Shown piece by piece: positions 25,641-58,274 of a stretch of 64,000 nt of DNA. The translations under genes were made by a program, and so were the position numbers. Every line of letters starts with the position of its first letter. Position 1 is the first letter of the stretch. The notes under the pieces were generated by a model. The model was not told where the DNA came from, did not search any database, and saw nothing but the letters and a program-made list of their open reading frames with translations. This DNA comes from Tubulanus polymorphus (Eukaryota; Animalia; Nemertea), in assembly GCF_964204645.1 (NCBI RefSeq), contig NC_134033.1, positions 578,131 through 642,130 of the forward strand, written 5' to 3'.

Positions 25641-26658
25641 GGGTTAAATGTTTACCGAGAACTATGAAAGCGGTTGAATTCTGTTATTAAGCATCGATTT
25701 CGGTTTAAACTACTCGAAACGAATTCTACGATAGCAAAATCATTTGTCAATTAAAAACACATGTTCAACGAGTTATTGAAGTCGAACTCGATGTTATAGA
25801 CAATAAATTCAATATATCTCAGTTGGACGTATTTCTAATTAGCAGCGAGCAGCAGCTGACTCTAACTAATCGACATTATTTCGACACATTTCAGAAAATT
25901 ACTCGAAATAAATTAAACAGTTTACCTCGATCATACGTAGCACGCAATACGCGTAAAATAATCTGGATTTATTGGAGATTTGCATTCATAAATGCACCTT
26001 ATTTCTGAGCATACTTTAATAAAACAACTCTGAAAGTCAAATGCTGCTCCCCATCGGGGCCTACGCCACAATCTTCGAGCGCCACCGATACGAGTGGTGG
26101 TCGGTTAAAGAACTATAACCTATTTTTGAGTGGAAATAGTTTAGTTCCTGTGCTGTCAAACTATCCGGATTCTAGAGGAAGGTGACTCATTTGAAACTAT
26201 TATTATATGAGCCATTTCCAAAAGTGTCGACAAGTTTTTGAAAAGGGCTCATAGCATTTTTTAGTTGAAATGTGAAAATCCTCGAAGGGGTTTTCATTGA
26301 TTGCGGGTTTTTATTCCTCAACTGAGTTAGACTTGAATCACTTGTCCGTACAAGAACCAAACAGATACCAGGTTTTATGTAACTGTTCTGCCATAACCGT
26401 TATCACCAGTGATAACGATATTTCGTTAAGGGTCAAAACCGAATAGGATATGGATTTTATCAGGATATTGAAATGATTACAAGTATTCCAAAAATAGCCA
26501 GATGAGGAAAGATTAAAAAGTAGATTTCCATTTTCGTGCAAGACACCAGGGCCCGCTTAGAGATAACAGGTGAATAAGGTGACTAATGGAATTTTAATTG
26601 TCACCAAGCATTTATCTACTGGTTATAGCTCTAATCAACTTTGGAACAAATGACCCCA

Positions 26659-27767: not shown

Positions 27768-27940
27768 CTAAAAGCGAAAAACCCAATTAGATGGAATAAA
27801 ATCTACGAATGAGTCGGACGTTTAAACTCAAATCGGAGCCATTTTTGTATTATTCAGATTTTGAAAATGGTTCATAGATTTGAATCGAAACGTCAGACTC
27901 TCTGCTAGTTTTTTCATCTCACTGTGGGTTTTTCGCTTTA
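27768..27940 (+). mobile_element. Fold-back element with variant (U3-A8) hammerhead-like core
   Basis: Inverted arms ctaaaagcgaaaaaccca / tgggtttttcgctttag. Core TTGAAAA-t-ggttc..gaatc-GAAA-CG-TC at 27861-27894. Helix I is not evident. Confidence 0.5.
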
Positions 27941-30099: not shown

Positions 30100-33000
30100 T
30101 CAGTAGGGCCCGAAACCATTAGCCACAGACGGGCGAGTTTTATCGGCAGACGATCTGATATTTGGCGGTACTCGCGGCGGTGCTGCTCGTGATGTAGCCG
30201 CGAAACTAGCGGCCACCGCAGAACGGGAATTATTCGCTGCAGTTCCCGGAGCCGTCCTCCAACTGTTCGGTATCTCCTACAATTATAATTCAAATTCCCT
30301 GTCATACCAATTAAACTGACCACAAATCAAATTCAAGTTCGTTGAAACGAGTAGTTCTATGAAGCAGCCGTTTGAGGCGGTTACGTCACAACTTACCTCG
30401 TAAATTCGTGGTTCTCTCTCGCTCGAGTCGAAAGCTGAATAGAATTGGAGAATCATATTTAGAATTCTCTGAATAATAAAGTTCGATTTCGAATTGACTT
30501 TAAAACAACGAACCGAATGGATTGATAGGTGCGCGCATTGTGATATAGGCGTCTTCAGCACGATCGGTCCAAATATTCTTCTGCAATTAACAAATAAAGA
30601 ATGAATTTAAGTTACGTAGGCTTAGCGTATCTACAGTATTCACAGTGACGCGGGATCCCGGAGGTGACCGACCATATGACGTCATATTTTCATAATAGAG
30701 CGGCCTTTTTTGTCTCAATTTTGTCTCTAATTTTATTTCGATGAAATCACACGTTATTGCCAGTTGCTAAACGAAGCAAGTTGATTGTTTAGGGAAAAAC
30801 AGTCGAAACGTATCATGACATCAATTCACTCAATAATTTCTAGCATTCATTGGTCTTCAATTCGCTTCAAAACTTTTCCTCCAAGACGTGTTGCACCGAT
30901 TCAGCGTCAACCTAGGTCTGAACAGATTACAACATCAAAACTACCACTGACGATAATTTAAACTTACGTAATAATCGCGTTCTCGGATCGCCTCGCTTAT
31001 TCGTATCTGCGTTTGCCTCAATTTCTCATCCAGTTTCATCAACTATTATCAAAAATATCCAAATATAGACCTGGGGCCGGTTGCATAGTCATGGCTTAGA
31101 CTTAAGACCAGTCTAAGACCAACTTGGTTCTATAGCCAATCTAACAACTTAAGACCAGTCTTGAAATTTGAAACCATTTTTGGACTCTGTGCAACTGGCC
31201 CCAGGTTTACTAATTATGCTATTCCGGATTACCGCTGGTGGAGGTGCGGGGCATTTACGAACAAACGGATGGTTTTCGGATGGTGCCCGAAGGTACTTAT
31301 GAACAATTAAATTTGTGATTTATTTTACTGGTGCCGACCTCGGTTGTTTTCTGTCGACATTTCTGTTCGACTCGAGTTTTCTCCGTTTCCAGATTCCTCA
31401 CTCGAATTCGCAGAGTTTTCGCGTCGCCTTCCAATTCGCGGACTTTCCGTCTGAGTTCGCGAATCTCGTCCGTGTCGTGGAGCTGTGAGTGAACAAATCG
31501 ACAGACATCAAAACAGAAAACGTATATACAGCGTGTATTATTCACATCTTACGAATAGAACGATTACCACACTGAAACGTTGTGAACGGATAATAAGATG
31601 AAAACCCACTATCTACAGATTAAAAGAATTTAAAAACAAGAATTTATTCGACCAATCTAAAATATATATAGAATACACGACGTTTCGATCTCACCCTAGA
31701 GATCATCGTCAGGTGTGTTTTTAAATTCTTTTGATCTGTAGATAGTGGGTCTTTATCTTATCTTACGAATGATTTTATATGTTTTGTAACAATTTTCAGA
31801 AAAATAAAGCTTAGTATCTATCTAAAATGTGGGGACAAAGTCCTTTTTTTGCGTACACCAAGGTCCGGAGACCATATATTGGGCTAGGTCAAATGATCCC
31901 TGGGCTGGGTTTCCCTAGATGAGGAAGCAAAATAGTCCCTGGAAACATTATGAAATGTGTGAAGTTATAAGCATGGTCTCTCATCGTTACTATAGTGGTT
32001 GTCACTCAGATTGAGGATTTATTCCTAGGAAGGGGTAAACTTTGATACTCAGTCTAACTGAACTAACAGAAACTGATGTTGATTTGTTTTTGTGTAAGTT
32101 ACCTGTAAAGAACGATCCTCGAATGTAGCCACGAGTTCATTCAAACGTTCCTGAATCTCCTCTTTATCCCGCGCCAGTCTCTCCCGATCGCGACGTTCTT
32201 TATCGAAATCTTCTTTATAGATCGTCACCTAAAACAAAGAATAGTTTTATTCTAAATCTCTAACCATCCCCGACTTCATTTTAAAGACAGTATCGGTACC
32301 TGCATCTTGAGAACTTCGTTTTCATCTTTGATGGACTGTAAATTCTCTGGAAGTTGCACCGGCTGCTCCTGCTGCTCCCGAGGAGGAGCGACGTTCGGCT
32401 GATGGATGGATGCCGGCTGAAACTGAATCTGTCCAAGGAATTCTTCTTGTTCATCCTTAGAAAAAGAAATTAAATTCATTAGTCTTTTCGTTAGGTCGGT
32501 GCAGTGCTCCACCTGTGGTTCTACCAGCTCCGCCATCCTACCCTCTTCCTCGGTGATGTCGACACAGGTCCGATCAATGTCCGACCAAACATGGATCTTT
32601 TGAAAATTCCAAAAATGTATTCATTTTGTAATTAAACACGTGGTTGTTCTGTTTTTTTTAAAAGAAACTCCCATTTGACATAATCAGTTTAATAAGTATA
32701 TAAGAATGGAAGATATGGTCCAGAACTATGATAGGCGATGATTTAGTGACAATCTTGTTAAAATGCATGTGGATGACTCTATAACAAGTTTTAGACCCCG
32801 TTCTGTCCCTCTCCGCGCTCCCTCGTCCCTCTGCGCAGCAACACTCACCCGAATCTGTTGGATTTTACGTTCAAGTTCATTCGCTTGTTCTCTCAAAGCA
32901 ACTTTCTCATTTTCACTCTCCAACTGTCGAGTTTCCAGACTAGCGCATCTCTGCTGTTCAACGTGCAGCTGTTGTAAGGCTTCCTCTTTATCGCGCTACA

Positions 33001-36000
33001 AACATCGAATCGAACAAACAATCAGAAACTATTTCTAACGTAGAAAACAACTTCAATTAAGAGGAGAGAATCCCACAATGATAATAAAAAGTCCGAAAAT
33101 GAAACTTCGAGATAGTAGTTTATTTCAACGTTTCGACTATATCCTAATAGTCATTTTCATTCCTGAAGATGACTATTAGAATATAGTCGAAACGTTGAAT
33201 AAACTACACTAGCTCAAGGAATACAGTATTCCTGAAGATGACTATTAGGATATAGTGGAAACGTTGAATAAACTACACTAGCTCAAGGAATACAGTATTC
33301 CTGAAGATGACTATTAGAATATAGTCGAAACGTTGAATAAACTACACTAGCTCAAGGAATACTGTATTCCTGAAGATGACTATTAGGATATAGTCGAAAC
33401 GTTGAAATAAACTACTATCTCGAAGTTTCATTTTCGGACTTTTTATTATCATTGTGGGATTCTCTCCTCATCGCGTCAACACGGATATAGTGTTCTACCA
33501 ATCGTGAACTTCAATTAAGTTTTCCTAGTCATGAAAACCGAAATACAACTAATAGGTTAACTATTCGTGATTAATACTTCGTTGTGTATTCTACGAATGA
33601 AGCAACGCCTTAATAACTGGCCCCGTTGCTGCTACTATCTCTAAACATTAAGTAAAGCCGGGCGTAGGTCGGCCTTGTGACAGCTTGCGACTCACTGCGA
33701 CCGCCAGCAAAGACCCGCCGACCTACGCTACCTTGCGACGCTGGCGGCGGGTTGCGACTGCCACTGAACGCCAGTCGCAATGAGTCGCACATGTTCTACT
33801 TCCTGCGACGCGACGTGACCGTGACCTCTTGAGACTGGCAGCAACTAGTCTGAAACAGTTGCTGACAATCGCGTCGCAAGGCCGACCTACGCCTGGCTTA
33901 ACAGTGAAAACGACTGGCTACATGACTACCGAGCCCAAAGAAATGTCTTTATAAACTACTTTAAGTTGTAAGGTTGTAACTATAGGCTATACCCGTGCAC
34001 TTAATTACATATTCTCTCTGAAAATGTCATCATAAAGACCTGTTCGGTATCAAGTTTTCGTTTCAGGTTAACCATCCAGCGGTCTATTTCGGCAGTCCTT
34101 GTTTCAGCCTGCTCAGTCAGTTCGATCTCTTTTTCTCGAGCGCCCGCTAGTTCCTCTTTCAGTTTGTAGATATCGCGCTCGTGTTCGCTTTTCATGTCAC
34201 TGCAGTATTTTTCCCATAGACGATTTGCCTTCTTTAACTATAGAATGCAGAGAGAAAGGACGGAGATATTTTAATTTGTTGGTTGAGTCCTGGACTCATA
34301 TTCGCTATTTTCAATGCGTAATGACGTTGTCAAGTTAATTAACGTCGATAATATCAAACTACGTTATTTTTCAACGTGTAAACTTTCATATATAAGTTTT
34401 CTTGTATATTTTGACCGCAGACTCGTCCGAAACGCAGTTGTTTTCACAATCACCAGTGTCTCAATAAAGCGGCCATCTTGGATCACGCGAGATCTCACTG
34501 TGATCTCGCGGGACTTTGAAAACACCAAGATGAAATAGATTGTTCAAATTAATGAATTTTTTGTAGAAAATACATTTAATTTGTAGATAGTGGGTTTTTA
34601 ATTCGTTATCAATTCACCACTTTGAGTGTGGTTATCGTTCTACCAAGATGAAATTGCTCGAATAAGAACTAAACTGACTTCGGCCATATTCCGTTTCATT
34701 TTCTCCTTTTCTTCGTCGAATTTCCTCTTCAGTTCGTCGCCATCGTTTCCTAACAGCGTCGCCTTCATAACGACCGGTTCTGACGGTTGATCACGTGCAC
34801 GTGTCGAAGTCGCTGATTGGCTAGCGGCAGGGGTCGTCTGCTCTTTCTGAACTGGTTTTCTCTCCGTTGACGTTGATTCGGAATTGACGGAATTCTCCGA
34901 CGTCGCCGATGATCGTCTGTTGTTACCTTGCTCGGCGAGTTTGCGTTCGGAGACACCGAGACGAGCTTTCAACACGTCCATGTCATTCCTGCATTTAAAA
35001 ACAGAATTAGTTAGAGACACTAAATCAGCTGAAAACGACCCGGTTACTCAGCCATGGCTAGGATTTAAAAACAGTCTAAGACCATCTGAATTCAGGGCCG
35101 GATCCAGAGGTCAATTATGAATGAACTTGTCACATCCCAAAAGGGCACTTTCATATCCAAAAAGGCAATATCACGCGCACCCCGCACTTAGAGATGAAGC
35201 AATTATCTTTGTTGCCAAGGAGGTGAAAGGACACAAAACACAAAAATTCCATGGACTTAGAGCAAGTCACACACGTCCCCAGGCCCTAGATCCGTCCCTG
35301 AAGTTCTACAGTCAATCAAGACACAACAATTTATCTTGGACTACAGTCAAAACTGCGCAACTGGCCGCAGGTGCCACTTCAGACTCGTGACAGTGCAGTA
35401 GACACAAGTATCCGCAAAATATAGATCTAGTATCCCCCTTCTTTCGTGTAGAATTTCTCAATTTTGCTCATGATCAGAAAAAGAACTTAGAAATAAATGA
35501 TCATAATATTGAACTGACTTCATGGAGTTGACCAGCGCTCTGAGCGACATATTCTCGTCGTGTAGTTTCACATTCTCTTGCTACAAAATACAAGTTTATA
35601 TCAATCAATACACGATGATGTCATAGGGGGATTTATGACGAGCAGACGATCGAATGCGCAAAAAAACCTACAGTGTTTTTGTATGCTCTGGACTCGAGGA
35701 TGAGTACGGCTTTATGAAGGTTGGAAAGGGATGGAGAGAACGGATTCTGAGTCTGACCGAGCGCGTTAGCTAGAGACATCGATAAATCCTGTACCTGCGC
35801 CGAAACGGGCGTCTCGCCTTCCGGAGCTGGAGTCACCGGAGCTGTCGGAGCCACCCGCTGAATGGAGAAAGAAGCGAATTAGACCGTGAATAGATTACAG
35901 TAGAATGTGTTGCCTCGGATCAAACGTTGGACTAGACGCCAGACGACAGTACAGACGCCAGACGACAGTACAGACGCCAGACGACAGTACAGACGATTCG

Positions 36001-58228: not shown

Positions 58229-58274
58229 TTTAGAAATATTTCGGGTGGTTGCTCCCACCCTTCTTCAGTCTAAA
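58229..58274 (-). ncRNA. Minimal type I hammerhead ribozyme
   Basis: The minus strand reads UUUAGA-CUGAAGA-A-GGGUGG-gagcaa-CCACCC-GAAA-UA-UU^-UCUAAA, with 6-bp helix I, 6-bp helix II and palindromic AAUAUU helix III. A partial inverted arm lies at ~58290-58320. Confidence 0.8.

Follow-up and report, generated by a model that had tools for sequence, protein, structure and literature searches.

The 64,000-nucleotide stretch of the Tubulanus polymorphus genome analyzed here (NC_134033.1, positions 578,131 to 642,130, hereafter the window; G000:C9:578131-642130 in the 268-Mb assembly that was searched) carries, within an intron, a 445-bp insertion whose body is a hammerhead ribozyme module repeated four times. 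This feature is very probably the 3'-terminal module of an endonuclease-bearing (EN+) Penelope-like element (PLE) of canonical type that inserted recently, in a version whose hammerhead segment has been reiterated as 69-nt units. The inserted element ends exactly as the autonomous PLE of family 1 in the same genome does, with a hammerhead, an arm and an optional 37-nt tail. It has no coding capacity of its own for the reverse transcriptase (RT) and endonuclease and, because its 445 bp contain no open reading frame (ORF), it is a non-autonomous or extremely truncated PLE copy. An initial annotation, made from the letters alone, had described a self-processing ribozyme array packaged in a fold-back element; its claims are taken up below where the corresponding results are presented.

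An autonomous partner in the same genome

The initial annotation had predicted an autonomous Penelope partner combining GIY-YIG and RT domains, and such an element was found in the same genome, with its hammerhead and 3' end in common with the window element. A GIY-YIG domain scan returned at least 150 matches, many of them in open frames of 817-841 aa and often arranged as inverted pairs. The three open frames that were examined each carry an RVT_1 domain followed by a C-terminal GIY-YIG domain, the canonical EN+ PLE arrangement. Family 1 (L044, L046, L047, L050, L051 and L054; open frames of 757-841 aa) bears a pseudo-long terminal repeat (pseudo-LTR) hammerhead identical letter for letter to the window hammerhead, and the identical motif occurs at both pseudo-LTRs of L046, L044 and L050, beside open frames of 833-841 aa. 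Positions 33365-33506 of the window, which comprise the last hammerhead, the arm and the tail, match L044 and L051 at 98-99% over all 142 nt, and a second site in L051 at 100% over 107 nt.

The order of parts is displayed most fully by L046, where the hammerhead at 2688-2721 is followed by arm and tail up to 2824 and by an in-frame ATG at 2828, which opens an 800-aa ORF containing both RVT_1 and GIY-YIG domains. The tail of this autonomous copy therefore ends 3 nt ahead of the ATG, and the counterpart of the window arm lies within 2722-2824, in the portion ahead of the ORF start. The next hammerhead follows 2858 bp downstream, and the full copy is bounded by its own 14-bp duplication. Two other families were observed in the genome. 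Family 2 (L043, L048 and L049; 817 aa) is abundant and has a hammerhead of its own, and a third RT-GIY-YIG family (L045, 820 aa) has no hammerhead detectable with the descriptor used.

Architecture of the insertion

The positions of all parts are compiled in Table 1. Tandem Repeats Finder identified a 69-nt period with 3.7 copies and 96% matches at 33159-33415, and a repeat finder located the inverted arms, separated by 211 nt, as well as the flanking 13-bp direct repeat. Near-perfect arms had been noted previously at about 94 bp; they are present, but their length is 99 nt. The array and arms had also been placed between the 13-bp repeats; on the right, the 37-nt tail intervenes between arm and repeat. 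The left arm belongs to an inverted partner whose hammerhead core is degenerate (AUGAAAA instead of CUGAAGA), and the same inverted-partner layout recurs in L002, L005, L006, L007, L016, L020 and L026.

Direct repeats of 10-16 bp, mostly 13, lie exactly at the outer boundaries of all nine independent fold-back copies in the genome and at none of the incomplete copies examined, so the 13-mer of the window is a genuine target-site duplication (TSD), as first proposed. The tail is likewise restricted to one end in each of these nine copies. Within the array, a 17-nt spacer palindrome ties up the helix I 5' strand of the hammerhead that follows. This palindrome resembles the head-to-head junctions of inverted and direct copies at L007, L016 and L026, and the 69-nt unit may descend from such a junction.

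Table 1 Features of the insertion and its surroundings, in window coordinates
Feature	Position	Strand	Remarks
Host exon	32849-32995	-	AG acceptor, GTGAGT donor; spliced in RNA assemblies; open frame of 49 codons
TSD, left copy, 13 bp	33049-33061		exact direct repeat of 33507-33519
Inverted 5'-truncated partner, tail-less (arm and degenerate hammerhead)	33061-33159	-	99% complementary to 33371-33469
Hammerhead 1	33158-33201	+	predicted cleavage 33196/33197; first helix I pair C-A
Hammerhead 2	33227-33270	+	predicted cleavage 33265/33266; G33257 disrupts basal helix II pair
Hammerhead 3	33296-33339	+	predicted cleavage 33334/33335; every model pair intact
Hammerhead 4	33365-33408	+	predicted cleavage 33403/33404; identical to autonomous PLE pseudo-LTR hammerhead
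Spacer palindrome, 17 nt	33217-33233, 33286-33302, 33355-33371	+	repeat finder
Arm: PLE segment from hammerhead cleavage site to first of two alternative 3' termini	33404-33469	+	98-100% identity to PLE family 1 (L044, L051)
Tail, 37 nt, right end only	33470-33506	+	layout across copies; published one-sided tail of 30-40 bp (PMC11167929, PMC8557442)
TSD, right copy, 13 bp	33507-33519		exact direct repeat of 33049-33061

The hammerhead units

Core positions (CUGAAGA starting at 33163, 33232, 33301 and 33370) and the repeat-finder result confirm a tandem array of four PLE-type hammerheads, minimal and of type I, with a 69-nt period. Written as RNA, each unit runs from UAUUC, the 5' strand of helix I, through CUGAAGA, a single unpaired U and a helix II of 6 bp capped by a 6-nt loop, to GAAA, CG-U, a U at the cleavage position and GAAUA, the 3' strand of helix I. 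The resulting fold has a 5-bp helix I and a loop-less palindromic helix III (ACGU), and the catalytic core (C3-U4-G5-A6-N7-G8-A9 and G12-A13-A14, present as CUGAAGA and GAAA) is kept in all four units. Both remaining helices are of PLE type: helix II has 6 bp with the unpaired U on its 5' side, and helix I is formed by UAUUC/GAAUA pairing, with N17 = U, a non-G cleavage nucleotide.

The units differ in minor respects. Unit 2 has lost its basal helix II pair through replacement of C by G at 33257, a position that is C in most RNA contigs. The first helix I pair of hammerhead 1 is C-A because the junction with the inverted copy lies there, and in hammerhead 4 an additional A past the cleavage site cuts helix I to 3 bp. 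The helix II loops read uagaau, uaggau, uagaau and uaggau from unit 1 to unit 4. This alternation and the C>G change in copy 2 had both been described correctly. The 138-nt higher-order dimer deduced from the alternation was rejected as a family trait; the A/G alternation is peculiar to the window copy, and the long arrays elsewhere carry G in all units, with identity at lag 1 equal to that at lag 2.

Covariation across PLE families

Eight hammerhead variants were aligned without gaps: the array unit, those of PLE families 1 and 2, three third-type variants, a fourth-type variant (window 31683-31712) and a U3-A8 core variant (window 27861-27890). Candidates were chosen with a descriptor requiring paired bases in helix II and, in certain cases, in helix I as well; the three window variants were chosen by helix II only. 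Paired bases occupied 96% of cells, compared with 62% after shuffling and 29-42% with the partner slid, the paired fraction being inflated because the descriptor itself demanded pairing in helix II and in some cases helix I. Changes on both sides were found in 11 of the 13 pairs, namely five of six in helix II (100% of cells paired) and all five in helix I (90% of cells paired), and helix III is palindromic in every variant, as ACGU or AUAU. The initial annotation had made its case depend on covariation in helices I and II, and covariation was found in all three helices. Core columns are invariant except for N7 and the published U3-A8 variant. PLE coding sequence is present at the source loci of three variants (L042, L043 and L046). 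This covariation signal across PLE families argues strongly that the hammerhead is real.

Additional PLE-type minimal hammerheads of other sequence families are located in the window at 31683-31712 (-), 58239-58268 (-) and 27861-27890 (+), the last being a U3-A8 core variant, UUGAAAA, as described in PMC4209133. A weaker candidate was observed at 26238-26270. The search for types with a Y-R pair at 10.2/11.2 gave 17 matches compared with 3 for the control, mostly degenerate, with only L055 clean enough for use.

Distribution of the repeat family

Relatives of the window element yielded at least 395 matches genome-wide. The junction of two adjacent units occurs 1367 times, compared with 0 for the control pattern read backwards, and the junction specific to the single pseudo-LTR hammerhead occurs 377 times. 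These pseudo-LTR junctions are scattered along contigs; among the places listed on C1-C3, array junctions lie mostly within the last 1-2 Mb of the contig. Mapping of unit, arm and tail on 30 loci revealed a common layout in which n units (2 to 25 or more) are followed by the arm and an optional tail, with both tailed and untailed 3' ends represented and an inverted partner at the 5' side of many copies. At G000:C3:26096618-26097787, an array of the 69-nt-family unit was observed at 67-nt spacing.

The closest relative, L002 (G000:C8:1351935-1355356), lies on another contig and is 97% identical over the full length of the window copy. L002 sits inside the hammerhead of another family, its 13-bp duplication overlapping a CUGACGA core, which may reflect a target preference of PLEs for other PLEs. 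The C>G change of unit 2 recurs in unit 2 of the L003 and L010 arrays, that is, in three independent insertions, so multi-unit arrays appear to be copied as arrays. In several array loci, the first unit follows genuine PLE sequence, from the pseudo-LTR and the 3' part, of at most 280 nt.

The starting point of arrays is constant, 4-8 nt ahead of the core, and does not coincide with the predicted cleavage site; the two halves of head-to-head copies start there as well. These 5' ends coincide at ATTC or CATTATTC, directly upstream of CUGA, in the independent insertions L008, L018, L027 and L029 and at the junctions of L005, L006 and L026. Such agreement is more suggestive of a template with a defined 5' end, or of a switch between templates at a set point, than of random truncation, and from the position of the ends we infer that cleavage does not define the ends of inserted copies.

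In runs labelled as two other organisms (X8 and X10), contigs were observed that are 99% identical to window 33296-33394, a unit junction, and to 33365-33466, a hammerhead with its arm. These could be due to close relatives, contamination or horizontal transfer.

Folding and predicted cleavage

The hammerheads would be expected to act only in pairs, in which adjacent units form a shared 4-bp helix III. For three adjacent unit pairs, the double-hammerhead fold was computed at -8.4 to -8.8 kcal/mol, compared with a minimum free energy (MFE) of -20.7 to -22.7 kcal/mol, which places the active fold about 12-14 kcal/mol above the MFE. The MFE structures contain the spacer hairpin, which occupies the helix I strand; the earlier suggestion that this hairpin could act as a built-in switch is compatible with the folding prediction. 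By analogy with published PLE hammerheads, those of the window are probably weak or protein-assisted. Self-processing of transcripts into 69-nt monomers or circles, as initially envisaged, is unsupported by these results, as the predicted active fold lies far above the MFE and array 5' ends lie away from the cleavage site.

Host gene context and transcription

The insertion occupies the intron upstream of the exon given in Table 1, 54-66 nt from its 3' splice site. In each of two runs of the same organism, one RNA contig covers only 32848-32997 of this region and continues into other exons. The host exon lies on the minus strand, where it is flanked by an AG acceptor and a GTGAGT donor, so the array is antisense to the host pre-mRNA, in agreement with the initial annotation. 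The intact hammerheads all have this antisense orientation, and the sole sense-strand copy is degenerate in its core. The 69-nt repeat family is transcribed, being strongly represented in contigs of two spliced RNA assemblies of the same organism; these RNA data are Logan contigs, which carry neither strand nor RNA ends. A joint of 33089 to 33477 was considered as an empty allele and rejected, since its 14 foreign letters indicate that it derives from another copy.

Proposed origin and alternative explanations

In the origin that we propose, an array-bearing transcript would be copied in trans by the PLE RT-GIY-YIG protein through target-primed reverse transcription. The endonuclease would make cuts staggered by about 13 bp, RT would initiate internally, at either of two positions separated by 37 nt, yielding copies with or without the tail, and priming on both DNA strands would generate the inverted partner. 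The multi-unit array would already have been present in the template RNA, because independent insertions share diagnostic variants. With all published PLE features present, the fold-back is an ordinary PLE integration footprint. The separate fold-back packaging element of the initial annotation gives way to the architecture of a standard PLE insertion, with an inverted 5'-truncated copy and a one-sided tail (PMC8557442, PMC11167929).

Several results weigh against this interpretation, in addition to the descriptor effect on the paired fraction described above. The Rfam check advised in the initial annotation, run over 32000-34600 at E up to 10, matched no hammerhead family and hence provides no independent model-based call; its sole matches were chance microRNA or small RNA models on palindromes. 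The null probably reflects the loop-less helix III of minimal variants, which the curated models would not describe. Across 139 ungapped units of the 69-nt family, identity is 87-100% per column, too uniform for a selection or covariation signal. Conservation within the family is no higher in the core than in the spacer, A6 for instance being replaced by U in 11 of the 139 units, so selection on single units is not visible. No array was linked to an ORF or a full-length PLE in the small sample of 30 array loci and seven full-length family-1 loci; the source of the arrays may be either a dedicated non-autonomous master or an autonomous variant that was truncated 5'. In the Logan contig runs, no contig bridges an empty site at this locus.

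Among the alternatives, chance resemblance, in which an AT-rich repeat merely happens to hold CUGANGA and GAAA and no ribozyme exists, is the least credible and would be very surprising. It could draw on the shortness of the core motifs and on the Rfam null, but eight divergent variants, three of them (L042, L043 and L046) at loci holding PLE coding sequence, all retain the core, the bulged nucleotide, the 13 modelled pairs and a self-complementary helix III. Furthermore, the architecture matches the published PLE minimal hammerhead feature by feature (PMC4209133), and the backward control pattern had no genome match against 1367 for the junction. A plain satellite is a more serious contender, though still unlikely. 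According to this explanation, a PLE end landed at this site and at others, after which slippage or unequal crossing-over amplified its 69-nt unit on the spot, the hammerhead being a functionless passenger. The clustering of inter-unit junctions near contig ends, set against the dispersal of single pseudo-LTR junctions, fits this idea, as do arrays of 25 or more units without visible ends and a core no better conserved than the spacer, and local amplification of PLE ends has been proposed in a 2026 preprint (10.64898/2026.07.22.740005). It does not account for arrays of 2-12 units inside TSD-flanked insertions at many unlinked sites, for the whole-length identity with L002 on another contig, or for the unit-2 C>G change common to three independent insertions, which indicates that arrays were copied as arrays.

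A minimal retrozyme appears improbable. In this model, plus-strand transcripts would self-cleave after GUU into 69-nt monomers that circularize, and rolling-circle reverse transcription would build the arrays. The period is exactly 69 nt, cores are intact in most units, some arrays contain 25 or more units, RNA assemblies are rich in the family, and canonical animal retrozymes do make circles (PMC7229834). Set against these points are the energy gap between the double-hammerhead fold and the MFE, the spacer hairpin that holds the helix I strand and the fixed array 5' ends away from the cleavage site. PLE minimal hammerheads also cleave poorly in vitro (PMC4209133), and in the one PLE tested cleavage was protein-dependent and dispensable for insertion, with no read ends at the site (PMC11167929). 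Moreover, self-cleavage would remove the arm and tail needed for priming, because both lie 3' of the last cleavage site. A variant of this model, which we regard as a long shot, would make the 69-nt unit a working minimal retrozyme whose adjacent units cut each other, perhaps with the PLE protein, and whose products circularize; PLE RT, primed on arm-bearing RNA, would switch to the circles, roll and write arrays of any length. If that were true, the units would rank with the smallest known replicating units bounded by ribozymes and would link PLE pseudo-LTRs mechanistically to retrozymes and subtelomeric satellites.

Significance and comparison with known systems

The element is genuine, young and PLE-derived, with a multiplied ribozyme module, and its kind is already known, because a 2026 preprint (Li, Clavereau and Pollet, 10.64898/2026.07.22.740005) interprets tandem hammerhead repeats of 51-972 bp as non-autonomous derivatives of PLE pseudo-LTRs whose multimers gather at chromosome ends. 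The 69-nt unit, initially thought to be shorter than known animal non-LTR retrozyme units, falls inside this range. The preprint bases the link between retrozymes and PLEs on co-occurrence and sequence trees in vertebrates; invertebrates and the life cycle lay, according to its authors, outside its scope. The contribution of the present case is the presence of direct mechanistic fingerprints of PLE integration on ribozyme arrays in an invertebrate genome, in a clean setting where the ribozyme repeat is nearly identical to its autonomous PLE. The one-sided tail, the two 3' termini, the TSD of about 13 bp and the inverted partner together support mobilization of arrays by PLE target-primed reverse transcription. 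With its short units and many young copies, the family provides a tractable system for asking whether cleavage has a role. For annotation, a single element family accounts for both a dispersed fold-back repeat and a chromosome-end satellite.

PLE minimal hammerheads, as described by Cervera and De la Pena (2014, PMC4209133), combine a loop-less helix III with a helix I spanning 4-5 bp and a helix II spanning 6-8 bp, the latter preceded by one unpaired nucleotide; they are active only as dimers, and weakly, and occur as opposite-strand copies 100-700 bp apart. The window motif resembles them in being of type I with a CUGANGA and GAAA core, a 6-bp helix II after one unpaired nucleotide, a short helix I and a 4-nt palindromic helix III, so that two copies must pair. 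It is also a pseudo-LTR motif located just upstream of the ORF, and opposite-strand copies a few hundred base pairs apart are common. Unlike those published motifs, which are mostly single and dispersed, it is also reiterated head to tail at a 69-nt period, with at least 1367 unit junctions across the genome.

According to Craig et al. (2021, PMC8557442), canonical EN+ PLE insertions are heavily truncated 5', often begin with an inverted copy that is itself 5'-truncated, and bear a tail of 30-40 bp on just one of their ends. The purified protein of one PLE cuts and extends both DNA strands and starts RT at two internal sites, the tail being the sequence between these sites (Frangieh et al. 2024, PMC11167929); in this PLE, the one studied biochemically, hammerhead cleavage needed the protein and was dispensable for insertion, and no RNA-seq read ends marked it. 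The window element shares with such insertions (PMC8557442, PMC11167929) the inverted 5'-truncated partner, the one-sided tail of 30-40 bp, the choice between two 3' termini, strong 5' truncation, target duplication and a 3' end extending past the hammerhead to the ORF start. It differs in that it lacks any coding sequence, its body being a multiplied ribozyme module, and in that arrays have a constant 5' end in place of scattered truncation points.

Similarities to animal non-LTR retrozymes (PMC7229834; 10.64898/2026.07.22.740005) include transcribed, low-GC tandem repeats (G+C of about 0.31-0.34 in the Rfam-scan matches), each with a type I hammerhead, multimers enriched towards chromosome ends and, when present, TSDs of more than 4 bp. 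Classical retrozymes (PMC7229834) have canonical hammerheads with loop-loop contacts, efficient cleavage and circle-forming units of about 170-400 nt, whereas the hammerhead here is the minimal PLE variant. Compared with animal retrozymes, the link to PLEs is direct in this genome, consisting of near-identity to a co-resident autonomous element together with the tail, the TSD and the inverted partner.

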